NCBI GenBank assembly: GCA_021613535.1 | Contig: CP075494.1 | Span: 7,192,001-7,256,000, forward strand | Direction of reading: 5' to 3' | DNA length: 64,000 nucleotides | DNA from: Adineta vaga | Lineage: Eukaryota > Animalia > Rotifera | In this document: piece by piece, positions 46,634-59,986 of the stretch | Numbering within the stretch: position 1 is the stretch's first letter | How the letters are laid out: the number at the start of each line of letters is the position of its first letter | Made by a program: the position numbers and the translations under genes | Notes under the pieces: model-generated | Seen by the model: the letters and a program-made list of their open reading frames with translations, nothing else | Told to the model about the DNA's origin: nothing | Databases searched by the model: none

Positions 46634-47725
46634 TTAATCCACATTCATTTGATTGACCATTGGTGGTTGATTAAAATCACGATTCATATGATAATCTGAT
46701 ACATATGGTGCTGGATTGGACCAAACACTATCATAACTTTCTGTTCGTTTTATTTCTGGTAATGGACGTTGATATTTACGAGAATTCAATGGCATCTGTT
46801 CTTGATTGCCATTATAATGATGGAATAAATCCCACATACTACCGGCACGTTCAACTTTCGCGGCTGTTGTTGCTGTTGTTCGAGTACGATCATTCGGTTT
46901 TGTGGGAGGTTTATGTGATGGTTCATTGACAGACGCATCATATTGCTAAGAGAAAACAAAAGAATAAAATAGAAATATTTCATTATCATTACTTACTTGA
47001 TCTCGTCGTGCATAATCCAATTGAGTTTGAGTAACATATTGTTGTTGTTCATATGGAATTCTCTCAATATGTCTTTGATCAACAGATTCCATATCATCTG
47101 ATTTTAAGCCAGTAATTGGAACTAAAATGATGAGCAGAAATTTAGCTTTCATTTCTCTAATTTTTATAATTAATTACCAATTCCTACCGTACGCATGTGC
47201 TTTGGATTAGCAGAATAACGACTATTTTGTCGTGAATATGTTGTTCTCTCATCTGTTCCATGTTGAAAAAGATTTTGGTACGAATTATCTCGTGTTTTCG
47301 CACGTTCATCTTGATTTCTTGTTCCTGAACCTGATGGATTTGTTTTTGATTGAGACCAATCCCACCAGCGTGATTCTTCTCGCTCACCATGTGCACCTCT
47401 CATTGGACCAGATGAACTAGCATTTGATCGATTGTTCTCAATCGGTCGTGTAGCATAAGGATTCTGACGTAAGTCTGGTGCTGGTGCGGAACTTGAATAT
47501 GCATTCAATTCAGTATAGAACGGTGCTGGTTGACGCGATTGAGTCTGTCGAAATTGTGAATTTTCCTGCTCAGAAGCTTCTTCTCCAAATATACGATAAC
47601 TACTCGAACTAAATAGCAATGATAGAAAAGACATAAAAACGAAAAACAAAACTTCAAGTTTACTTGTGTCTTTCAGGTGCAAATCTTTTATGTTTGATTT
47701 CATCGAAATTGTGCATTTTGGCCAT
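46634..47725 (-). CDS. Low-complexity protein, possibly C2orf73/CIMIP6-like, 4 coding exons
   Basis: MAKMHNF...ERHN|SSSYRIFG...SRWWDW...RYSANPKHMRTVGI|VPITG...IERIPYEQQ...|QYDA...MNVD*; junctions canonical and in frame. Family call is tentative. Confidence 0.7.
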
Positions 47726-48525
47726 ATTGAATTATAAAATATCTATAGTATAATAAAAATAACAATTTAAAACCTGAAAAAGTATAATCATCAAGATCTT
47801 TACTCTCAAATAGAACATAGGAAATTAATAAAGACATTATATATACACATTGACAGTCACATGTCGTACAAATTGAACTTTTTCAGATAAAACCAAACAC
47901 ATTTCACTGAACAGAAGTTATCTTATTTGTCAATCTGTCATAAACGTTCAAACTATTCTAACTTTCTCTCATTCACCAATTCGAATTTTCTATATGACTT
48001 CATTCGAAGTCGTTCGAAAAGAGTATAACGTAAATTAGCTTTGTTTTTCTCTTCGAAGTTCACCTGTTGTTATCGTAACATAAATGTCCTATCGTCGTCT
48101 TGCCTGTTCATTCAATTCACTAACACAAACATTCTATTCACCATCACCGATGCATTCATCATAGGAACCGAATGTCATCAAAGTGCATAAGTGCATTATT
48201 CAATGTATGTTTATCGGAAATTTCTGATTAAAAGTATTTTTATAAATCATTTCATCTTGAAATATAATACATCAAAGTAAAATTGATTTATTTTTCCAAA
48301 ATTTATATTTATTTATTTATACACTTTCTCCGTCATTCTCTTTTCTTCTGGGTTAAGCTAAGGTCGCGTGCTTCTATGCATGACTCATCGAAATTGAGAG
48401 AAAAGATTCTATTCCCACCCACCACATCATTTTCTCTTTATCATATTTTTCTGTTCTCAACTAAACAAGTACAAGAGAAATCAGGCGTTCATATTTATTT
48501 CTAGATACTTCCTAGTCTTATAACA

Positions 48526-49211
48526 ATGACAAGTCCAACTGATTTATCGCAATTGTATATTTTATTATCTTACGAAAAGGTGTGTGTGTCAAAAAGAAAC
48601 ACGAATCAGCGTAAATAATCATCATATGTTTATCTTTCTAGTTACAACGGTCGACAATAAGTCAACGTCAGAGACCTATTGAAGCTTCATTACGAAATCG
48701 TTTATTAGTATGGCGTTTTTTAAAGAAAATTGAAAATGAACCAGTATCACCAATTCTAAATTCCGAACAGCAATTAATCACACATACCGATCCAAATAAT
48801 GGTTCCTGGATACTTGATTTAAATGAAACTTGTGTGAATAATGATGATGATGAAATTGATATGGATATCGATTCAGATATCGTCACTGTTGTAAGTACAA
48901 ATGAAACGAATAATTCCACCTGTGACACAATGGATATGGAACAAGACACAGACGTAACATTATTATTGAAACGTGCAATTGGTGCTGAACGTCGACAAAA
49001 AAATTCATTATCAACAGAAAATCCTATTTTAAATGAAACAAATAATTCAAATATATCCGAAACAACAACAACAACAGCTTTCGAAGAAACCGAACAATTT
49101 TTTCACGATCTTTGTGCCGAATTAACGAATACAACAGCAACACTTGTTTCAACATCGACAACCAATTCATTACGATGTTCAACATCACCTGAGCCAGCCT
49201 TAATTCATTAA
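48526..49211 (+). CDS. SERTA-domain protein, 2 exons
   Basis: LYILLSYEK|LQ...IEASLRNRLLVWRFLKKIENE resembles the SERTA pattern (S..KL...E.SLR..VL....L..I..E); acidic C-terminus with EQFFHDL. Confidence 0.7.
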
Positions 49212-49900
49212 AATTTGACAGTATATAATTTTTTTCTTATTAGGTGCTGTGTCTTGTCTTCTTCGTGTCTCATATTATTTTTTGTTTTCGTTCTATCGGA
49301 ATGATCATGTTTTCTTTCTCTAGCAACACATCGCTCAAATATTCCTCGAATGACTCCTGTGTTTTTCAATTCCGATCCGGTCCTTGGTTGTTTTTGTTCT
49401 TTTTCAAATTGATCTCTTGGATTATTCACAAAAATGATGCAAATATAACGATAGAAAGAAGAAAATAGAAATTAAAAAAAAAGGAAATCCTGTATAGTTA
49501 TGTCAGTTTATTCTTGACTTTTCTTATTCTTACTTCAGATGTGTTCGTGTCTTTTTTGTTTCAAAGAAAAAAAAATGAAAGAAGATATGCTTTTTCTTTT
49601 TCTGTCATTAGTGTTTTTTTTTAAATACTCTTTATGTTTTCGGTTTTTTTTCTCTATCTCTCTCTCTCGCTCTTTTCTTTTTTCATTACGCACGCGTTGC
49701 ATCCTGTGCAAACACAACAGAATTGATCTATTTATTGTAACACGTGAACTTTTTTTTTTCTAAAAAGAAGAAAATAAGAAATCTCAAAGATTAACCAAAT
49801 TCAATTTTGTTTCTTTTATTTCGAAAAAATTCCTACGAATACGAACAAAAAATGAACTAAATTTAATATCATACTTGTTATATTTTAGACGACAACAAAT

Positions 49901-51316
49901 ATGAATCGGACCGAATCTGGAACATCATTGGCACGTAACAATAATGAGAGAGCATCAGCAGCAGCCATCGAAGAATCGAATGAAACTCTTCCTGAAATTG
50001 ATGATGAAGAAACTCGAGAAGTGCAATCAGCATTTTCACATATGATCGATCAAACATGTTCCGATGGGCCAGCAACTGATGGAAATATCTTTGAACATAC
50101 ATATGTTCCACGTGATTGGTATGGATTTTTCTTTCGTTCAATTGTTCCAACGCAAGAATCAGTTAAACAGCATCTTGAACATGAATTACCTCGACAATTT
50201 TTCAACTATGATGGTAAAGAAGGTGTTAAATATGCTTTTAAGGTTCTCGATCGTCGTACGAATACATTAACATATGAACAAATGCCATCGTATCATAAAT
50301 ATGGTATGCGTTTGTTGTTCAGTGGTCCGGTTCAACGTGAAATGTTACATACACGTGCTATAAAAAGTTTCTTTGCTCGGGAAACGAAACGTTTAGGTAA
50401 AGCGTTTGATGAATCAAAATCTTGTAAACATATTCCATCGTTTGTGAAAATGTATCAGATCAATCTGGATGAATTACTCTATCCAAAAATAGCAGATTAT
50501 GCAACATTTAATGAATTTTTTTATCGAAAACTGAAACCAACTGCTCGACGAATTGCTGATCGAAATGATCCAAATATCATTGTTTCAGCGGCGGATTGCC
50601 GTTTAATTCTATTCAATAATATCAATGATGCAACACGTATTTGGATTAAAGGTCATAACTTTTCACTTCACCATTTGTTTCATGATGAAAAATTAGCCGA
50701 AGAATTTGATGGCGGTTCAATTGCTGTCTTTCGTTTAGCACCAGTTGATTATCATCGTTTTCATTCACCCATTCATGGGAAAGTTAGTGGTGAGATGAAG
50801 AAAATAACTGGGACTTATTATACAGTGAATCCAATTGCAATAAAAGAAAATTTAGATGTTCTTACTAGAAATCAACGTACTATGATCACAATTGAAAATG
50901 AAACTGTTGAAAAAATAGCTTTCGTAGCTATCGGTGCATTACTTGTTGGATCAGTTAATTTCACTGTTGAACCTCATCAATCGATTCAAAAAGGAGATGA
51001 ACTCGGTAAGGCAAATCATCATCTGTTTTTTTTTCTGTTTTTGAAAATTCCTTCGCTCTATTTAGGTTACTTTGCTTATGGCGGTAGTACTATTGTTGTT
51101 GTTTTTAAAGCAGGTATGATTAAATGGGATGACGATATCCAACATAATTCCGACAATTCCATGGAAACTCTTGTTCGAATGGGAGAACGTATTGGTCAAC
51201 GACAAACGGAGAGTCAACGTCAGGACTATTTAATGAATGCTTCTAAACATAACAAAAAACATGCAACAATAACTCAACTTTTCAATAACTTTCCTCGACT
51301 TGAACATATCAAATAA
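49901..51316 (+). CDS. Phosphatidylserine decarboxylase proenzyme, fungal/PSD2-type (GGST); intron 51006-51065
   Basis: TFNEFFYRKLKP.AR, SAADCRL, IWIKG, FRLAPVDYHRFHSP, YYTVNP, IGALLVGS, KGDELG|YFAYGGST self-cleavage motif. Confidence 0.95.
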   Translation: MNRTESGTSLARNNNERASAAAIEESNETLPEIDDEETREVQSAFSHMIDQTCSDGPATDGNIFEHTYVPRDWYGFFFRSIVPTQESVKQHLEHELPRQFFNYDGKEGVKYAFKVLDRRTNTLTYEQMPSYHKYGMRLLFSGPVQREMLHTRAIKSFFARETKRLGKAFDESKSCKHIPSFVKMYQINLDELLYPKIADYATFNEFFYRKLKPTARRIADRNDPNIIVSAADCRLILFNNINDATRIWIKGHNFSLHHLFHDEKLAEEFDGGSIAVFRLAPVDYHRFHSPIHGKVSGEMKKITGTYYTVNPIAIKENLDVLTRNQRTMITIENETVEKIAFVAIGALLVGSVNFTVEPHQSIQKGDELGKANHHLFFFLFLKIPSLYLGYFAYGGSTIVVVFKAGMIKWDDDIQHNSDNSMETLVRMGERIGQRQTESQRQDYLMNASKHNKKHATITQLFNNFPRLEHIK

Positions 51317-51471
51317 TTTCTGACATCTATTTTTCCTTTCCTATTCTTTTATCATGTGATATCATCGACATTTTATCGTGAAATGACTCTACAATTCTGA
51401 ATATTTACACAATATATTTTAATTTTTCTTTCAGATCTAATTTAAAAACAACAACAACAACAACAACAATA

Positions 51472-53703
51472 ATGGATAATGATGATGAACCAAATTTAAC
51501 TAATTTATATCCATCAGCAACTAATGTGATGACAACAACAATTGCACCTAATCATTTTTTACTTTCAACTTATCGTGATAATCTTCGAACGAATATTGAT
51601 AATCATCATGACAGTCATCTTGCACCATTAATGATGAATATACATGGCAATGTAAAAACAAATCTCTCATCATCATCATCATCATATAAATGTTGTTTAT
51701 GTCGAAAAATAGTCGATGATGCAACATTAACATGTGCTAAATGTGTAAATACAGGTCGATTTTGTCCGTCAAGACATGATACATGTTCAAATAAACGAAG
51801 ACAAGTTCTTGCAAATATGTTAAATTCAAATGATCAAATCGAATTTCAACAATATTCAAATAAACATTCGATTAATACACCACCACATCTACAGTAAGAG
51901 TTATTTTCATAGATTAACAATTGAAAATTTCATGAAACACTATTCTAGATGTTCAGATCGAATGTTTTTATTAAAAAAATTCAATGCAGAAAAGAAAGTT
52001 TTACAAGAAGAGTAAATAAAAATCATTATTTATAAAGACAAGAATTCACTATCTATCCTTTAGATTTCAAATGAAAATGCAATCAACAATTAAACTTTAT
52101 AAAATGGTAGAGTAGTTTTATTCTATTGAAACATTCGTCATCGAACATAATTTTTAGTCGGAAGAAATTCTCATACGTAAAAATCGTCTTACTCTTGTGA
52201 ATCAATCAATTGAACGATTACGTAATCAAATTCAACAAGGTATGAATGAAGGTTTCTACTATGAATTTACTTTGATTTATGTTTCAGGTAAATTGGTTAA
52301 TATCAAAATACAACAAAATAATGATAAACGATGTACACGTATTCAATTTCTTGGCAAGAAAATTGCTGATATAAAAATGGTTTTAAATTCTTCCAATGAT
52401 GAAATACGAAAAAAGAATGAAGCACGTATTGAACATGAAAATAAACTTTATATTATTCGTCGACAACGTCTCAATGAAGTCTATAAATATATTTTTCCTG
52501 TTGAACATGTTTCATCAATTGAAGAGTAAATTTATTTGGTAATAAAATGACAAAAATATGTTCGCTTCTTTCTAGAGATTTAGCATCAACAATGAGAGCA
52601 TTATCAAGTGCTCAACAAACGACTGTTGATGAAATTAATAGTGATTATTCGGAGAATGATGAATCATTAAATGTTGGAGATCGATATCGAATTGTTCATT
52701 CGTGTTTACCACTTAATGGAGATTATCAAATTACAAAACGTATGTTACCAATCACTCATTCGTGTATGCGATCTTTATGAGAAATTCTTTAGAATGAAGT
52801 CGATATATTGTGTGATTTATTTGAATTTATTTTGTTTTTAGTTCTTTCAACTGTTGATGTCGATGGTAAAACGCAAGATGTTGATTCACTTCAATCAACA
52901 CTTTCTCATGAACTATATGAAGTTCTTTCAGCTCTATCTCATGCTTGTCAATTAATCAATGTTATTGCCTTCTATCTTCATATTGCATTACCATTTCGTT
53001 TACATCAATTGTAAGATGATAGGATTCCATCGATGTTTATATTACTATTTCTATTTTGTTTTTCTTAGGGAATTTAATACCGATAATTTAACACCTGATC
53101 GTCTTCGTGCTGATATTGCAAAATTGAATGCAAATATTGTTTGTAGTTGTATATCACAAGGTATACCAATTGATAAAACAAATGTAACACATACACTTGA
53201 AAATTTATGTAAATTATTAACATTTAAACGATATCTCAGTCGGTTAGTATGACAAACAAGTTTGGTGTATTTGTTTTTTTTCTTACGTTTACTATTCTTT
53301 CTTTTTTTTTATATTGAAGACCAAATCCTGTTGTATATTCTCAACAATACATTGATATGATGGAAGAAGAAGTCAATGAGATAAGTCGTGCTTATGTAAC
53401 AGATTATTGGTTTGATGATGTTGAAAAAGATGTCACAGATCTTTTGAATAGTGATGAATGGGAAACAGTACCACAAGGTAATTAGTTTCTTTCGATGAGA
53501 AAGTTCTTTTCATTTGTCAAAATTTAGATTATCATATTCCGGAAGATCCATCTATTCATGAACGTCTTGGTTCATTACCTTCATTACCTGGTCAACAACA
53601 TCAACCACAACATCTATCTGTTATGAGTGGTTCGATTGGTTTTCTCAAAAATAAAGGTTCTACTCTTATCAATTCAGTTTTTCGCAGTTTGGCAAAATCT
53701 TGA
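51472..53703 (+). CDS. ATG14: Beclin-1-associated autophagy regulator ATG14, multi-exon
   Basis: CCLC...LTCAKCVNTG.F cysteine motif, coiled coil, YIFPVE, LPLNGDY, ALSHACQLINVIA..L...LP..L, KLNANI..C.SQ...HTLENL, DEWETV, amphipathic C-terminus. Confidence 0.9.
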
Positions 53704-53895
53704 AAATATTTTTTGTCTCTTCTTTGCTTTTTTTTAAAATGGTGCTAGTATCTTTTCTGTAATATTCTATACATATGTACCATATATAAATAACACTTTT
53801 TTGCTCTTTTTTTTTAAAACTTTATTCAAGAAGATAAACACATATAAGAAAAAGAAAATAAAAGAACCTCAATTCGTAATTTTTCAGATAAAATT

Positions 53896-55413
53896 ATGTC
53901 ATCGAATTTAACTTCATCACATTTCCTTCAAGAAATGGCTTATCCGCCCTATTGTATTCAACCTTTGAAATCTTGGGGTATGGTAGCAGTCGGTGGAGGA
54001 GGTGGTACGGCGAAAACTGGTGTCGCCAATGCAGTGGATTTAAAATGGATCTATTTAAATCAATCATCAGATCCAGCTAATGATCGATGTTCAATACAGA
54101 ATGTCAATAGTTTTACTCAACATGATAGTGTAATGCGAATGGTATCACTACGCAAACAACATGAATATCTTATTTTAGCATTGAATCGACAATTAAAAGT
54201 TATTATGCTTAAAGCTTCAGAAAGAGATATGGACAATGGTTTAGCGATGAATATACCACCACCGCCGCCCATGACGAATATTCAAGATGCAGTACCAATA
54301 GGACCAACTCAACGAACTATTCGTCGTCGACATAATTCTTCATCATCAACAGCACCAATGGATTCAGCTACGATGCAACATCGTCCATCGATTGTACTTC
54401 ATCGTAATGGTCAAGCAACAGTAGAAGCTATTGGAAATGAAACAACAATTGTGACATCACCAACTACTCGTTCAATATCATTTAGTTTTCCACCACCGAC
54501 ACCAACATCAACAGGATCAACATCAACCATAATAAACAATATCTACACAGTACCTATTCAAGATCAACAATATGTTAATGCATTAGTTGTTTGTCCTGCT
54601 ACACAATCGAAATTATTTGTTGGTGCTAGTGATGGATCATTAACAATCTATGAAATTATTTGGCCAGCTTCGTCATCATCAGATCGTTTAATTCAATTGA
54701 ATTTATTAACATCATTTACAGCACATACAAAAGAAATCGATGATTTAGCTGTTGATCCATTTGGTAATTGGCTCATCAGCGTTTCACGTGATCATTTAGT
54801 TCAAATTCGTCAATGTTCATCACCTTTCGATAAACATTGTGAACTTGATCTACGTCAATTTGGTACAAATAAAGCTGTTCCAACACCAAAACCATTATAT
54901 CGTATTCGACATGTTCGTTTCGGTATATCACCTTCATCTTCTTCATCAAATGCAACTTATTATCTCTATACAAGTCTCATTCCACAAACTATCGTTGATA
55001 AAATAGCTAGTTATATTGTTCAATGGACAGAAAATAAACAACATCAATTTATTGTTCGACAACGTCGTGCAGTTTCATTTGATCGGATATCTGCTATAGC
55101 TGTGAGTAATTGTGGTCAATATGTATCCGTTGGTGATTCCGGTGGTTGTGTACGAATTTATGAAACGGATCGATTAAAAATGTTGTATGAACATCGTGCA
55201 CATTCAATATTTGTCACCGATTTAGCTTTCTTATTACGCGAAGAAAATTATCTCTATGAAACAAGTGTTTTAAGTATTAGTGCGGACAAAAATCTCTATG
55301 TACATAATGTACATCCTCCGCAAACAAATATATTTTCTGTTTCATTTTTAATTGTTATCGGTCTGTTATTGCTCTTTTTACTATTATCACAAATTCGTTT
55401 TCGATTTCATTAA
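53896..55413 (+). CDS. PREB: PREB/Sec12 Sar1 GEF, intronless
   Basis: YPPY...GGGGGTAKTGVAN K-loop, WD-like AHTKEIDDL and AHSIFVTDLAF, C-terminal TM helix. Confidence 0.9.
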   Translation: MSSNLTSSHFLQEMAYPPYCIQPLKSWGMVAVGGGGGTAKTGVANAVDLKWIYLNQSSDPANDRCSIQNVNSFTQHDSVMRMVSLRKQHEYLILALNRQLKVIMLKASERDMDNGLAMNIPPPPPMTNIQDAVPIGPTQRTIRRRHNSSSSTAPMDSATMQHRPSIVLHRNGQATVEAIGNETTIVTSPTTRSISFSFPPPTPTSTGSTSTIINNIYTVPIQDQQYVNALVVCPATQSKLFVGASDGSLTIYEIIWPASSSSDRLIQLNLLTSFTAHTKEIDDLAVDPFGNWLISVSRDHLVQIRQCSSPFDKHCELDLRQFGTNKAVPTPKPLYRIRHVRFGISPSSSSSNATYYLYTSLIPQTIVDKIASYIVQWTENKQHQFIVRQRRAVSFDRISAIAVSNCGQYVSVGDSGGCVRIYETDRLKMLYEHRAHSIFVTDLAFLLREENYLYETSVLSISADKNLYVHNVHPPQTNIFSVSFLIVIGLLLLFLLLSQIRFRFH

Positions 55414-56027
55414 TTATTTTTTGTCCTTGTTTTGAACTTTTATTCCGATTATTTATATAGGCAAGAAGAAAGACTATATGTTATTGGGTTTTAGATCAGC
55501 ATCTCATTTTATTATTTACTTATAAGCATACATTTACAGCGTAATTATATGATCTAGACGTTCACTTTAAAACCAATATGGTATTCATTCATCTACGGTA
55601 ATTCTAATTCTCATATCAATGCATATTGAAATCGAATGTTCGAGATATAAGATACTTTCCAATGAAGTTTGTTACGCACAACGGAAATAGGATATTTTCT
55701 AGTAGATGTGAATATATCAAGTTCTTTTTAATTAAAAATGTATTTGGATGACTATCTTCTGTCTTTTCATGAAGAACAACACATTTTCAGTCGTAGTGCA
55801 TATATCAATGAAATCTTAGTAAAAATAACTATAATAATTTGTTGTTTTTTTTCTTCCATTTTAGATTTCAATTCCACGATGTTTGCTAAAATTCCGTCCG
55901 TTTGTTCATATCATTTGCGCTAAATAAGTTATATTTTGTTTGTTTTTCTACAAAATTTGTCAAAATAAACATACCATCATCTCTTATTGAATTTCTCACT
56001 ACTTTCTGTCTATTCAGACTGCTGAAC

Positions 56028-56207
56028 TTCCTCTCTTCTTTCAACCGATTAGTTGGTAAAAAGTAAAAAATAACGTCTGTATCCTTGATTGAATGAGATG
56101 CACAAAATGGAAAGCTAAACGGGAGTGAAGATGCTGAACAAAAAAAGGAAATACTAACAAATGATGCCAGTGAAAATGAGAATTTTACTGAGATACCTAA
56201 TTCATCA
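56028..56207 (+). repeat. Dispersed direct repeat, copy 1
   Basis: Shares core GATTGAATGAGATGCACAAAATGGAAAGCTAAACGGGAGTGAAGATGCTGAAC with 57882-58092. Confidence 0.92.
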
Positions 56208-57881
56208 AGTAGAATGTTCTGATTTCAAATCATTGCAGATGTGAATGTGAATGTTTTATAAACCGTTTGTACTATACATCAACTTTTTGATAAATGAAAT
56301 TTTACATGCATTGTATAGGAACTACTGGTCTTCTTTTGTTAAACATGGCTTCTTAACTTATGAGATTGGAACTGATCACAAAGAACCATCGATGAAACAA
56401 AATTGCTATTGCTGTATCAGTTTCAACGATAAATATTTTAAAATTTTGGAAAGAATTTGATTCTATGCTAGAATGATGAATAAATGTGTTATATAAATAT
56501 TTCTACATAATCTTGGAATTCTACTATGTAAGATAAGATGAAAATGTACCAAAGAATTCAATATATATATAGATAGTATTTCTGTTTTCAACAGAAGAGA
56601 ACTATTCAATTCTTCACTTTTCTTCTCTTACTACAGAAATGAATGAATATATAAGCTAACTAGTAACCATATCCTTAAAAGCGCTAAAATATGTGATTTC
56701 TTATCAGATTATTTCTACAAAACAATACTTTTTTGTTGTCAATATGATCGACAGACTTTTGAAAGTCGCGATTAAGCGTCAAGACTGCCGATTTTGAAGA
56801 CGTGGGTGGTATTTATTAAAATGGTTGCAATAGTGATAATTAAAAACAGCCTATTTGAATCGATCGTGAATAAATAGCAAGTGTTCTCGAGTATTGTTTA
56901 CTGCTGTTTAGTTGATGAACATTTATACAAATGTGTATAAGAGTATCGGGTAGACGTTACTTCTGACACATGTTTGCATTTCATACACCTTCATACAGTC
57001 AAAACATGTTCGTAATAACATCTTATCATTTTAAAAGTTCAAAGAACAACTACATCCTATTCGATTTGAAATTACCATTTCACATTATTCATCAGTTTTA
57101 AGTACATTCCTTAAGTAATCTTAGAACATTGACGTTCACTTATCACGGATATCGTATTCATTCATCTACGATTATTCTAGTTTCTATATCATTTGACATC
57201 GCCTTTCGAAAAGAAGAAGAAGTCGTATGTGAGAGACTGACGTTGCTAAAATTTGAAGATATGTGACAAATTTTCATGAAGTGTCGAATGTCTTTTACTT
57301 TCGAGAGATATATCATCATCTGAACTAGAACTGAAAGTTGCAAGTGTGAGAGAATATCACGTTTCTTCTAATCAAAATGTACTTGCAAGAAGAACGTCTA
57401 TGACCACTATTGTAACTTAAAATTAAATTAAAACTTAGATTGCAAAAGTTTACACCGCTAAGAATTCTAATTTTATCCTTACGTGAGTACTATACTTTAG
57501 TTCGTCTATATTTCTGTTGAACGTATACTCCACGTTATAGAATATTTGTCTTTTCACGAAGAAAGCCATGGTTCCGGTTCTACTGACATAATGTATTCAT
57601 TCACAGTAGGATCAATGATTTTCATGACGGAAACAAGTAGTTTTTGATCGTTTGTAAATCTTAATTAGAAGTGTACACTAAATCACTTGAAAAAAAAGCG
57701 ATATTAGCGACCTCTTATTACTTGGTGGTGTTCATATCTTATTCAAAATTTAAGTCACATTCAAACAAAACTCGCCTAGCTATGTTTGTCATTGTCTATA
57801 GGCAGTCGAAGATGCTATGATTCAAAATTTCGTCAGGATACAACCAGTTCAATTACGAGATCGTTCAGTTGAAGTAAAAAT

Positions 57882-58092
57882 TTCCTCTCTTCTTTCGACT
57901 AATTATTTGGCAAAAAGTTAAAAAAAAGCCGTCTCCATTCTAGATTGAATGAGATGCACAAAATGGAAAGCTAAACGGGAGTGAAGATGCTGAACAAAAA
58001 AGGAAATACTTGATACGCTAAGAAGACTTGGAGAAATACTAACAAATGATGCCAGTGATAATGAGAATTTCTCTATAATGACTAATTCATCA
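57882..58092 (+). repeat. Dispersed direct repeat, copy 2 (extra 30 nt; degenerate exon-like)
   Basis: Same core as 56028-56207 plus extra segment 58011-58040. Confidence 0.92.
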
Positions 58093-59986
58093 TTCGTTAT
58101 TTCAGTGAATATATCATGATGCATGAATTGAAAAACAATATTTTACATGGTATCATACTGATGATTTAGAAATCTAATGAAATGAATAGTGTCATATGTA
58201 ATTATTCTGACACATCAGGATTTGTGAAGATAGTTAGGGCAGGATGTGGAATATAGAACAGTTGAGCTTTATTATCGCCAAAAGTATTAATCATGACATT
58301 TAAGTATGAAAGATATTGGGTCGGAATTTAGGTCGTGAATAGAGTTACTTTTGTCTTTGGATTTCGAGATAAAGATGTGTTAAGCCAAGATTGCCGACTA
58401 GTTTTAGTACTATTGTATAAAGATCTATACGCTTATATATTATTTTTTTCATGAAATACTATTACTATGAGAAGAGATTTGGCTTAGATCCATTGAAATT
58501 AAAATAAATATTTTCTATCTTCTGCAATGTCAAAGTCTGTACGTGCTTCCGTTCAATTTAGTGATCGTGGTGAGACGTAAGCAACGAGCTGATACATGAC
58601 AAAGTGTTTCTGTTTCCTGATTAGACTTGCTATAATAAGTTTAGTCCAAAGGAGAGTACATGGAACTAAGAGTTCCTATCTATTTGTGTTTTTATAGAGA
58701 AAAAAACTCGAGAACTGAAATCAACATCATTAAGCAAATGTCACTAAAGAAGAAAATATAATAACAGGAAAAGAGGCATTTTGTTTAGCAAAATGTTTTC
58801 ATCCGCCAATGTTTTCTAAAGTCATGATTTCATAGTAAGTTCAATCTCCTACTTGCTTATTTGCCTTAGGAGATGTGGAGTGTCAAGTTTGATAGTTTTG
58901 AAAAGAATCAGGAATTATTCTAGTATTATCGGCATCATTCTGGGTAAAGGACTATAAGCTAATTTGTGATGGTAACCTTCGTATCAGTCTGTCCTGTTTC
59001 TATAAGAAATTTAAGGTTCATCAAAAATGTGTGAGGATTTCTCAAATTAGCTATGAGTAAAAAAACAAATTTCATTATGTAAAGAAAGTGTAGATTTAAT
59101 TATGATGATTGATTGATTGATTGTATGAAGAAGAATCCATCTTGTTCTTTTTTATTCGAGTATTCATTGAGATTAAACATCAGTAATTTCATTGACGTCA
59201 TATTGAGATTATTTATTAGTTTAGCATATGAATCTATTGAGATTTTGTCTTGTTTCATTATTATTCATCGTTTGACTAAACACCGGAATCAAGTCACCAA
59301 ACTCATTATAGCATCTGTCAAAATTAAAGTCTTCTATTTTTCAAGTGTTTCATGATATCCATGCAAGGCGGAAGTTAGAGATGTTATGAATAGAAAAATA
59401 GAGAATGTATCAAATATTACTCACATAATGAAAAAAAAGAGCGAGGAGGAGAGCGAGAGAAATATTAATTTTTCTTTCTCACTAATAGTCAAAATATTAT
59501 ACGACACAACATGGTTAGGACGTTATTTAGTATATATATATAGCGTTAAATAGAGAATTTGTCGATTTGAGTTTATTAGAGGGAGTGATATATAGATTAA
59601 CAGGATTTCTCATTCTTTTCCTTTATCCAAGAATTTTATGAACAAGTACGATGAGTTTAAGATGAGATTTTGATTATCTAAATGAGATGAACAGCAAGCC
59701 AGAGGCATGCCGTTGAAAACCAATTACTTCCCACTTATGAAGATTACGAAAAAGAAATTTTTTCTCTCTCTTTCTCTGTCCTCTTGTGTGTTACAGTAGT
59801 TAAATGTTCATAGACAGTGAGAAAATTAGTAAAACATTCCCACACATTTTGTCAAGTCATCAGAAATGACCGTTATGACTTCATTACATCTCATTTCTCA
59901 TATTTTCTTTCTTTCTTTAGATACTTTCATATAAAGAGCATCGATAGTTCAATAATTAATCTAAATTAAAACAAAAAAAGCTCGAT

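Follow-up and report, generated by a model that had tools for sequence, protein, structure and literature searches.

The three neighbouring genes described here, for a fungal-type phosphatidylserine decarboxylase (PSD, 49901-51316), ATG14 (51472-53703), and a PREB/SEC12 protein (53896-55413), all on the + strand of a 64,000-nucleotide stretch of Adineta vaga DNA (the window), are interpreted with moderate confidence as a conserved operon-like cluster of the tunicate or C. elegans SL1 type, maturing via spliced-leader (SL) trans-splicing. The locus displays an operon hallmark at base level, namely a poly(A) site atop an SL acceptor, together with an SL-capped two-gene RNA contig in a related bdelloid. 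Co-transcription of the cluster is likely, short of proof because internal promoters may still operate. A preliminary description of this DNA had given the gene coordinates, the gaps, the acceptors, and an AATAAA at 53857-62, all of which are reproduced on the sequence; its three gene identities likewise hold (PSD by Pfam PF02666, ATG14 by matches to human ATG14, and SEC12 by PREB structure 5TF2).

Layout of the cluster and RNA evidence

From stop codon to ATG, the coding sequences (CDSs) are separated by 155 nt (PSD/ATG14) and 192 nt (ATG14/SEC12), and at the level of untranslated regions (UTRs) the ATG14/SEC12 spacing is -2 to -6 nt. Given that gaps of 135-192 nt contain both UTRs, a promoter is left without untranscribed DNA. 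SL trans-splicing in rotifers has been known since 2005. The rotifer SL sequence, GGCTTATTACAACTTACCAAGAG, was taken from the literature (PMC3795323), and 42 SL-donor sites (SL followed by GT) matching it are found in the A. vaga genome. RNA evidence consists of assembled contigs from four studies (runs including X1, X5, X6, and X18), which may fuse overlapping transcripts and in which a precursor and overlapping transcripts are indistinguishable; the RNA evidence at the locus exceeds chance motifs. An Rfam scan of 47000-59000 returned no match. The features of the first gene and of its junction with ATG14 are as follows.

49880-49888, + strand: PSD acceptor ATATTTTAG (TTTTAG ends at 49888), a probable SL site with the exon from 49889 (X1 contig)
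49901-51316, + strand: fungal-type PSD, 451 aa, GGST motif, one intron (Pfam, RNA, tree)
51317-51435, + strand: PSD 3'UTR, extending at least to the predicted ATG14 acceptor (X6 contig 14)
51423-51434, + strand: predicted SL acceptor of ATG14, TTTTTCTTTCAG followed by ATCTAAT (conservation, related bdelloid)
51472-53703, + strand: ATG14/Barkor, 562 aa, ATG at 51472, stop at 53701-03, ten exons (RNA joints, human ATG14 matches)

The PSD protein matches PF02666 (E 1.7e-51) and possesses the G-S-T self-cleavage motif (...YGGSTIV) right after the intron at 51006-51065, which is in frame and stop-free and whose joint is seen in 4/4 runs. The X1 PSD contig begins exactly at the AG, at 49887, with four unmatched letters ahead, which fits an SL ending in AG. 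Between 49620 and 49819, RNA is absent in X6 and X5; a 255-letter loose end at 49642 has no match anywhere in the window and was dismissed as a low-complexity match.

All nine ATG14 joints are seen in RNA contigs, and phases and open frames were verified for each of the exons (51472-51893, 51949-52011, 52064-52106, 52158-52239, 52288-52525, 52576-52739, 52842-53010, 53069-53242, 53320-53477, and 53528-53703). Exons were searched singly, with the natural uninterrupted open reading frame (ORF) of the related bdelloid RNA contig L025 serving as a full-length stand-in. Exons 7 and 8 are colinear with human ATG14/Barkor residues 295-383, exon 1 encodes an N-terminal Cys motif (CCLCRK..LTCAKCV), and the orthologous L025 ORF matches human ATG14 with the Cys motif included (E 1.3e-22) and Pfam PF10186 at 40.2 bits versus a cut-off of 33.2; UVRAG is absent from the matches in these identity searches.

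At the PSD/ATG14 junction, X6 contig 14 ends at 51435 plus 17 letters inside a masked low-complexity stretch, placing the end of the PSD RNA at 51435 at least. A. vaga contigs break in an (AAC)n run at the ATG14 5' end, where 51436-51480 are masked. The acceptor context, YAG followed by AT(C)TAAT, is kept in A. steineri, Rotaria, and contig L028, and in the related bdelloid RNA contigs L024 and L025 the SL is joined just 5' of the ATG14 ATG. We infer that ATG14 receives the SL in A. vaga and that PSD and ATG14 are co-transcribed.

The ATG14/SEC12 junction

The following features span the second junction and the third gene.

53741-53779, + strand: conserved non-coding blocks in the ATG14 3'UTR, GGTGCTAGT and TATA-like TTCTGTAATATTCTATACATATGTA (five-sequence alignment)
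53857-53862, + strand: AATAAA, poly(A) signal of ATG14, 27-31 nt 5' of the observed tail site
53873-53887, + strand: SL trans-splice acceptor of SEC12, TTCGTAATTTTTCAG, exon from 53888 (SL loose ends in X6 and X18)
53889-53893, + strand: poly(A) addition site of the ATG14 mRNA, 2-6 nt 3' of the SEC12 acceptor
53896-55413, + strand: PREB/SEC12 (predicted Sar1 GEF), 505 aa, intronless (5TF2 match, full-length RNA contigs)

The acceptor motif TTTTTCAG ends at 53887 (AG at 53886-87), and the letters ACTTACCAAG (X6) and CTTACCAAG (X18), present as loose ends before 53886 in two studies, match the rotifer SL; an X1 contig carries five extra letters at the same acceptor. The complementary end is captured by X6 contig 15, which ends at 53893 and continues into A9 and Illumina-adapter-like letters. 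The AATAAA hexamer is not kept in the other species compared. The blocks GGTGCTAGT and TTCTGTAATATTCTATACATATGTA align in five bdelloid sequences, approximately 90-120 nt 5' of the SEC12 acceptor (TATA-like part at 53755-79), and may act within the 3'UTR or serve as an internal promoter.

Judged by sequence, the third protein belongs to the PREB/SEC12 family and would by family be a Sar1 GEF: among solved structures it is closest to human PREB (5TF2, E 8.6e-16), in an alignment that includes the GGGGxAKTGxxN loop (K-loop, residues 33-45), and a C-terminal hydrophobic segment (residues 479-505) is a predicted membrane anchor. Mosquito PREB falls within its distant cluster. P0145, a more remote PREB-like protein, lacks an ATG14 neighbour, an observation that carries no weight for monogononts.

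Conservation in related bdelloids

Three RNA contigs of the related bdelloid (L024, L025, and L026) read, in order, ..CTTACCAAGAG, a 5'UTR, the ATG14 ORF, a 238-nt spacer, and a 503-aa SEC12 ORF; the ATG14 ORF is uninterrupted, that is, fully spliced (579-580 aa), and the spacer is unprocessed. A fourth, L027, bears SEC12 alone, with the SL (TACCAAGAG) joined exactly at the CAG of the spacer. L025 and L026 stem from two Logan runs and L024 from a JGI assembly that may share its data with L025. At its junction L024 has tagag in place of ttcag, possibly an assembly hybrid. The Logan contigs L009, L010, L023, and L028 were rejected as RNA, being genomic (introns present), and were used for synteny and spacers only.

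Gene-order conservation across rotifers, suggested in the preliminary description as a check, is borne out in the three bdelloid families sampled (Adineta, Rotaria, and Didymodactylos), in which the trio order is kept. The order PSD > ATG14 > WD40 > ICAT occurs in A. steineri, Rotaria sp. Silwood1, Didymodactylos carnosus, and the ohnologous loci of A. steineri and A. vaga; the A. vaga ohnologue retains PSD and ATG14 next to a broken SEC12. Acceptor contexts are conserved among the compared bdelloid loci, and the co-oriented CDS gaps in comparison loci form two groups, a short one of 135-177 nt and a long one of 764-3736 nt. The Didymodactylos gaps measure 517 and ~1090 nt, which leaves space for promoters. 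Because the opposite-strand neighbours (CMIP6 and F420 oxidoreductase) are equally syntenic, conserved order is not operon-specific. In orthologous loci, PF06384 is found immediately 3' of the WD40 gene, and several assemblies annotate ATG14+WD40+ICAT, or WD40+ICAT, as one fused gene. In the A. vaga window, the corresponding region contains two further features.

55567-58092, + strand: two ICAT-like units in tandem (~55567-56210 and ~57140-58092), apparently degenerate (repeats, tblastn)
55598-55864, + strand: GT..AG intron linking the post-SEC12 region to the next (ICAT-like) unit (X1 RNA contig)

The two units are direct repeats ~1856 nt apart, in which tblastn with orthologous ICAT parts as query reveals stops and a frameshift. 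The intron is supported by an X1 contig that runs from the SEC12 CDS through 55597, with a loose end equal to the window from 55865 onward.

Probable maturation of the cluster

Under the favoured operon-like reading, RNA polymerase II would initiate in the ~690-nt gap 5' of PSD and continue through the whole cluster, with a single promoter presumably serving all genes. At each junction, a given precursor would undergo cleavage and polyadenylation, completing the upstream mRNA, or, alternatively at the same junction, SL trans-splicing, capping the downstream mRNA. The trans-splicing and the polycistronic unit proposed in the preliminary description fare unevenly: trans-splicing is backed by SL letters at the SEC12 acceptor and by a PSD contig that starts at the AG with its extra letters, and for ATG14 it is seen in the related bdelloid only; the polycistron is favoured by a layout devoid of intercistronic space, with its single promoter still conjectural. 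As for polycistronic RNA itself, SL, spliced ATG14, spacer, and SEC12 do occur on one contig in the related bdelloid, bearing in mind that contigs may merge transcripts; among A. vaga RNA contigs, none bridges two genes, and contigs stop at the junctions.

It is conceivable, if rather unlikely, that the genes are tightly packed only, with ATG14 and SEC12 transcribed from separate promoters, starting inside the 3'UTR or last exons of the preceding gene, and short outrons removed by SL trans-splicing; a reading of the tail-site/acceptor overlap as a by-product of genome compaction is likewise held to be improbable rather than negligible. The TATA-like block about 110 nt 5' of the SEC12 acceptor, conserved in five species, would suit such promoters, as would the wider gaps in Didymodactylos at the same gene order and the breaks of A. 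vaga poly(A)+ contigs at the junctions, and the two-gene contig of the relative is also expected if the SEC12 start lies within the ATG14 3'UTR. These points are countered by the proximity of tail site and acceptor (2-6 nt), the hallmark of Ciona operons without intercistronic regions and of SL1-type operons in C. elegans (PMC7986045), by gaps of 135-192 nt that are filled by both UTRs, and by the SL at the 5' end of a relative's contig running through both genes.

Origin of the PSD gene

The description of PSD as foreign is sustained, in the sense of fungal-type, by its match list and by the bdelloid clade in its tree. The best 120 of 1432 matches, extending to 288 bits, include 59 named non-rotifer ones, every one of them fungal (best 439 bits), and no non-rotifer animals. 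In the tree, the bdelloid sequences make up a single clade (SH-aLRT 97) adjoining chytrids; rooted with an outgroup, they fall within the fungal set (SH-aLRT 95-100), a chytrid-side nesting that relies on a very long outgroup branch, with bdelloids and fungi merely flanking one branch when the tree is unrooted. Other PSD loci in the genome lie on C3, one of them canonical-looking with an LGSC motif. On these comparisons, the PSD of the locus is of the fungal type and distinct from the animal mitochondrial PISD. It is probably an old fungal-type acquisition, furnished with a spliceosomal intron, probably receiving the SL, and present in all sampled bdelloid families. The arrangement is old because PSD occupies the same position in all three of these families and in both ohnologues, and a recent capture of the enzyme is unsupported.

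That PSD is not foreign at all, and is instead an ancestral opisthokont extramitochondrial enzyme that bdelloids and fungi retained and the other animals lost, is considered decidedly unlikely. The unrooted topology, in which bdelloids and fungi are two sides of one branch, accommodates such descent, as does an intron-bearing gene in every sampled bdelloid family; nevertheless, it demands many independent losses across animals, and it sits poorly with the purely fungal named non-rotifer matches and the lack of any non-rotifer animal in the best 120 of 1432, as well as with the outgroup rooting that puts bdelloids inside the fungal set.

The question of an autophagy module

The cluster had also been proposed to be an autophagy-membrane module, in which PSD supplies phosphatidylethanolamine (PE) for Atg8 lipidation, ATG14 targets PI3K complex I, and SEC12 provides for COPII vesicle supply. 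The connection among PE, COPII, and autophagosomes is established knowledge, ATG14 is autophagy-specific, and the trio order is kept in all three sampled bdelloid families. A functionally selected operon of foreign PSD, ATG14, and SEC12, co-regulated, for example, in starvation or desiccation, is nonetheless very unlikely: the cluster runs on into ICAT, a Wnt-pathway protein unrelated to the others, unrelated opposite-strand neighbours are equally syntenic, SEC12 is broken in the A. vaga ohnologous block with PSD and ATG14 kept, and the functions of PSD and SEC12 are general housekeeping. In nematodes and tunicates, moreover, animal operons mostly combine unrelated genes. The autophagy story is attractive and, for now, a narrative, unsupported by these data; unrelated housekeeping genes have probably been packed together in operon fashion here, and not selected as an autophagy module. 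It is highly improbable that, early in bdelloid evolution, an ATG14-SEC12 polycistron gained a fungal PSD as its first gene and was kept for co-delivery of PE, PI3K complex, and COPII functions whenever autophagy is called for, a reading that, if true, would make the locus a functional, partly foreign eukaryotic operon, used, for example, in entering or recovering from desiccation.

Comparison with known systems

Like other horizontally acquired bdelloid genes, PSD has non-animal (fungal) nearest relatives, is chromosomal with animal genes around it, is expressed, and has acquired an intron; it differs in being old (all sampled families, both ohnologues), in heading an operon-like cluster, and in that vertical descent with loss elsewhere keeps a small probability. 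The idea that SL trans-splicing eases the use of foreign genes in rotifers has already been published (PMC6053224).

SL2-type operons of C. elegans and other nematodes share a polycistronic precursor (putative in A. vaga), 3' end formation with SL trans-splicing, and mostly unrelated genes, but they have a ~100-nt spacer and a dedicated SL2, whereas A. vaga has one known SL and no ATG14/SEC12 spacer. The operons of the chaetognath Paraspadella gotoi, a gnathiferan relative, are defined as genes less than 250 bp apart of which at least one bears an SL, a definition that the A. vaga cluster fits, although with another SL and in another phylum; the chaetognath study regards both trans-splicing and operons as independent inventions of separate animal lineages. 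Operons and polycistronic mRNAs were stated in 2021 to be unreported in Rotifera (PMC7986045), a 2025 paper names rotifers only in passing, and the literature searched contains no report of rotifer operons of this layout.

The closest resemblance is to the operons lacking an intercistronic region in Ciona intestinalis and Oikopleura dioica and to rare SL1-type operons of C. elegans, which likewise comprise co-oriented genes served by one SL type, have downstream acceptors a few nt 5' of the ATG, and tend to be fused by gene predictors. In Ciona, the upstream poly(A) site lies ~0-1 nt from the trans-splice site (PMC7986045), and the A. vaga overlap is 2-6 nt. The A. vaga cluster differs in belonging to Rotifera, in its fungal-type first gene, and in a single promoter that we infer. 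The locus may indicate that bdelloids use tunicate-style operons, and it bears on how often operons arise where SL trans-splicing exists, on bdelloid gene annotation, in which several public models fuse these genes, and on the expression of foreign genes, an old fungal-type enzyme being the first gene of the cluster.

Gene Models and Identities

The three-gene cluster spans 49880-55413 of the window, which corresponds to G000:C5:7192001-7256000 of Adineta vaga, and lies entirely on the + strand:

49901-51316, +: PSD (Pfam PF02666, E 1.7e-51)
51006-51065, +: single PSD intron, 60 nt, in frame, spliced out in four of four RNA runs
51472-53703, +: ATG14, ten exons, 562-aa model
53896-55413, +: PREB/SEC12, intronless, 505 aa

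In the window sequence, the acceptor-like motifs and AATAAA lay exactly where the preliminary description had placed them, as did three co-oriented genes separated, stop to ATG, by 155 nt (PSD-ATG14) and 192 nt (ATG14-SEC12). The proposed identities were likewise upheld by Pfam PF02666 and by matches to human ATG14 and human PREB. Across its full length, the PSD ORF shares 96% identity with NCBI protein I4U23_024202, the mismatch being the translated intron, and all nine ATG14 introns are GT..AG and backed by RNA joints. ATG14 exons were used as queries one by one and never joined for any search; exon 7 resembles residues 295-329 and exon 8 residues 334-383 (E 5e-5) of human ATG14/Barkor, and exon 1 contains a CxxC...CxxC motif. 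The orthologous uninterrupted ORF of L025, an RNA contig of a related bdelloid, passes the Pfam ATG14 cut-off (40.2 bits vs. 33.2) and matches human ATG14 (E 1.3e-22) in an alignment that includes the Cys motif. The top solved relative of the WD40 protein is human PREB 5TF2 (E 8.6e-16), with the GGGGxAKTGxxN loop aligned; the C-terminal end is a hydrophobic anchor, and mosquito PREB was found in a distant sequence cluster of this protein. RNA contigs from the A. vaga runs X1 and X18, unlike those from X6, carry an in-frame 12-nt deletion allele at 53595, where the last ATG14 exon is rich in Q and H.

RNA Evidence at Gene Junctions

RNA from four runs and four studies, all as assembled contigs, was placed on 49620-55600; all four runs are spliced and therefore RNA-derived. 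Directly before 53886, on the SEC12 side, X6 contigs carry ACTTACCAAG and X18 contigs CTTACCAAG, which, once genomic AG 53886-87 is added, give the 3'-terminal letters of the rotifer spliced leader (SL), GGCTTATTACAACTTACCAAGAG (PMC3795323); an X1 contig carries 5 additional letters there. Given these letters and the 42 sites in the A. vaga genome where GCTTATTACAACTTACCAAGAG is followed by GT, SEC12 is SL trans-spliced at the predicted acceptor AG 53886-87, with the leader joined at 53888 as anticipated. An X6 ATG14 contig stops at 53893, followed by nine A's and Illumina-adapter-like letters, which places the ATG14 poly(A) site at 53889-93, 2-6 nt beyond the SL acceptor of SEC12. Most of the 42 SL-exon|GT sites are arranged head to head in pairs with ~156 nt spacing, chiefly in clusters on contig C5 (e.g., C1:2551158/2551314, C5:9884354-9925971, and C5:10912929-10934589).

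For the leader expected at 49889, the correspondence is partial: an X1 PSD contig starts at 49887, the acceptor AG, and the 4 unmatched letters preceding it fit an SL remnant. The X6 PSD contig extends to 51435, one base beyond the predicted ATG14 acceptor AG 51433-34, and continues with 17 further letters that fall in a masked low-complexity stretch; the PSD 3' end thus lies at or past that acceptor.

Four RNA contigs of a related bdelloid (L024-L027), whose SEC12 is 74% identical to that of the window, were found by exact-protein look-ups of SEC12 orthologues. L024 (JGI 3300002344) starts with TACCAAGAG and L025 (SRR5248462) with CTTACCAAGAG; each is ~3.6 kb and proceeds past the SL letters through a short 5'UTR, an uninterrupted ATG14 ORF (579-580 aa), and a 238-nt spacer (ending ...ttttttttcag|attttaac... 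in L025) to a 503-aa SEC12 ORF. The A. vaga ATG14 exons map colinearly and in one frame onto this ATG14 ORF, exon 3 (14 aa) being without a match. L026 (SRR5248463) shares the ATG14-SEC12 junction of L025, and L027 (SRR5248430) has TACCAAGAG at its start, joined exactly at the spacer's CAG. The related bdelloid therefore has both an SL-capped two-gene contig, bearing in mind that an assembler can merge overlapping transcripts and that L024 and L025 may share one data source, and an SL-SEC12 form. L024 and L025 show that ATG14 is trans-spliced in this animal. The proposal of a leader on ATG14 holds there, and that of RNA spanning the gaps may hold for ATG14-SEC12; A. vaga ATG14 contigs begin only at 51501, within an (AAC)n region that leaves the 5' end outside them, and no contig from the four runs on 49620-55600 bridges two of the three genes. 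At the junction, L024 reads tagag (...tttagag|atttt, ~1960-1975) vs. ttcag in L025 and L026 (...ttttcag|atttt), and may be an assembly hybrid of SL-bearing and unprocessed forms.

Conserved Gene Order and Spacers

The order PSD > ATG14 > WD40(SEC12) recurs in the following loci, bearing out, among bdelloids, the suggested synteny:

A. steineri: gaps of 134 and 176 nt
Rotaria sp. Silwood1: gaps of 158 and 201 nt
Didymodactylos carnosus: gaps of ~1090 and 517 nt
Metagenomic Adineta-like DNA (L009, L010, L028)
A. steineri ohnologous block: ATG14, WD40, and ICAT annotated as one 1176-1250-aa gene
A. vaga ohnologous block, G000:C2:12456000-12473000 (L029 and L030), -: ~210-aa gene > PSD-b > ATG14-b > SEC12-b > ICAT-b

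A wider block (innexin, F420 oxidoreductase (-), CMIP6 (-), and the ~210-aa gene) is also conserved, and the kept order is therefore not specific to PSD, ATG14, and SEC12. Gaps between co-oriented coding sequences at the loci retrieved form two classes, 135-177 nt and 764-3736 nt. In the A. steineri ohnologous block (L006 4328-6994), CMIP6 (-) and the F420-type oxidoreductase (-) share an orientation and are separated by 169 nt, possibly another operon-like pair next to the cluster. In L023 (Logan SRR27500694, 847-2500), from a more distant organism (39% GC), a PSD of the same type (56% identical) lies ~184 nt ahead of an ORF that bears a Cys motif like that of ATG14; were L023 non-bdelloid, it could date the PSD-ATG14 pairing.

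Spacer acceptors share a conserved YAG|AT. In the ATG14 3'UTR, GGTGCT and the TATA-like block TTCTGTAATATTCTATACATATGTA precede the SEC12 acceptor by ~90-120 nt; the non-coding blocks of this region, kept in Adineta, Rotaria, and the related bdelloid, are:

53741-53779, ATG14 3'UTR: GGTGCTAGT and TTCTGTAATATTCTATACATATGTA

These may act in the 3'UTR as a regulatory element or serve SEC12 as a TATA-like promoter element. The TATA-like block leaves room for an internal promoter. Separate promoters embedded before ATG14 and SEC12 are a tentative alternative, albeit a rather doubtful one; co-transcription of PSD, ATG14, and SEC12 is considered moderately likely.

Origin of PSD

All 59 named non-rotifer sequences in the top 120 of 1432 PSD matches are fungal (Mortierellomycota, Glomeromycota, Mucoromycota, chytrids, and Basidiomycota; 38-51% identity, top 439 bits). 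The tree built from 17 bdelloid and 21 fungal sequences groups the bdelloids in one clade (SH-aLRT 97) beside two chytrids (95), although the root is unsafe because the outgroup branch is very long. The foreign character ascribed to PSD is probable, the simplest reading being a fungal origin with acquisition before the bdelloid radiation. Retention of an ancestral PSD in bdelloids, with loss in other animals, appears unlikely, as no other animal occurs among those best 120 matches down to 288 bits. The A. vaga genome contains four PF02666 loci: this PSD, its ohnologue, and two on contig C3, one of which resembles the mitochondrial type in having an LGSC motif.

ICAT-like Units and the Autophagy Interpretation

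ICAT (PF06384) follows WD40 in Rotaria, Didymodactylos, and the A. steineri and A. vaga ohnologous blocks, and public models often merge the two genes. In the window, it is represented by:

55567-56210 and 57140-58092: tandem ICAT-like duplication, spacing ~1856 nt
55598-55864, +: GT..AG intron (X1 RNA contig, SEC12 CDS to 55597 then 55865)

Stops, a frameshift, and a length difference of 29 nt in the tblastn readings of the two copies give them a degenerate look, although copy 1 is spliced in RNA, the X1 joint at 55597/55865 connecting the post-SEC12 region with the next unit. The donor at 55598 is part of the duplicated unit; its GT has been lost from copy 2 (57140-57191). Decay in the A. 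vaga ohnologous block is opposite: SEC12-b is broken (fragments in three frames, K-loop changed to YGGGR, middle absent) and ICAT-b reads intact, whereas the window has intact SEC12 and degenerate ICAT. Because ICAT belongs to the same gene string, SEC12 and ICAT decay reciprocally, and PSD and SEC12 have general functions, the autophagy module initially proposed is very improbable.

Comparison with Known Systems

A 2025 paper loosely includes rotifers among lineages with trans-splicing and operons, and the idea that SL trans-splicing may ease foreign-gene use in rotifers has been voiced (PMC6053224); the literature searched yielded no dedicated report of Adineta or bdelloid operons. What the present locus adds is that poly(A) site and SL acceptor coincide at base level, and that the first gene is of fungal type. 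Its layout is that of tunicate operons and C. elegans SL1-type operons (PMC7986045), and the cluster also falls within the operational operon definition used for chaetognaths.
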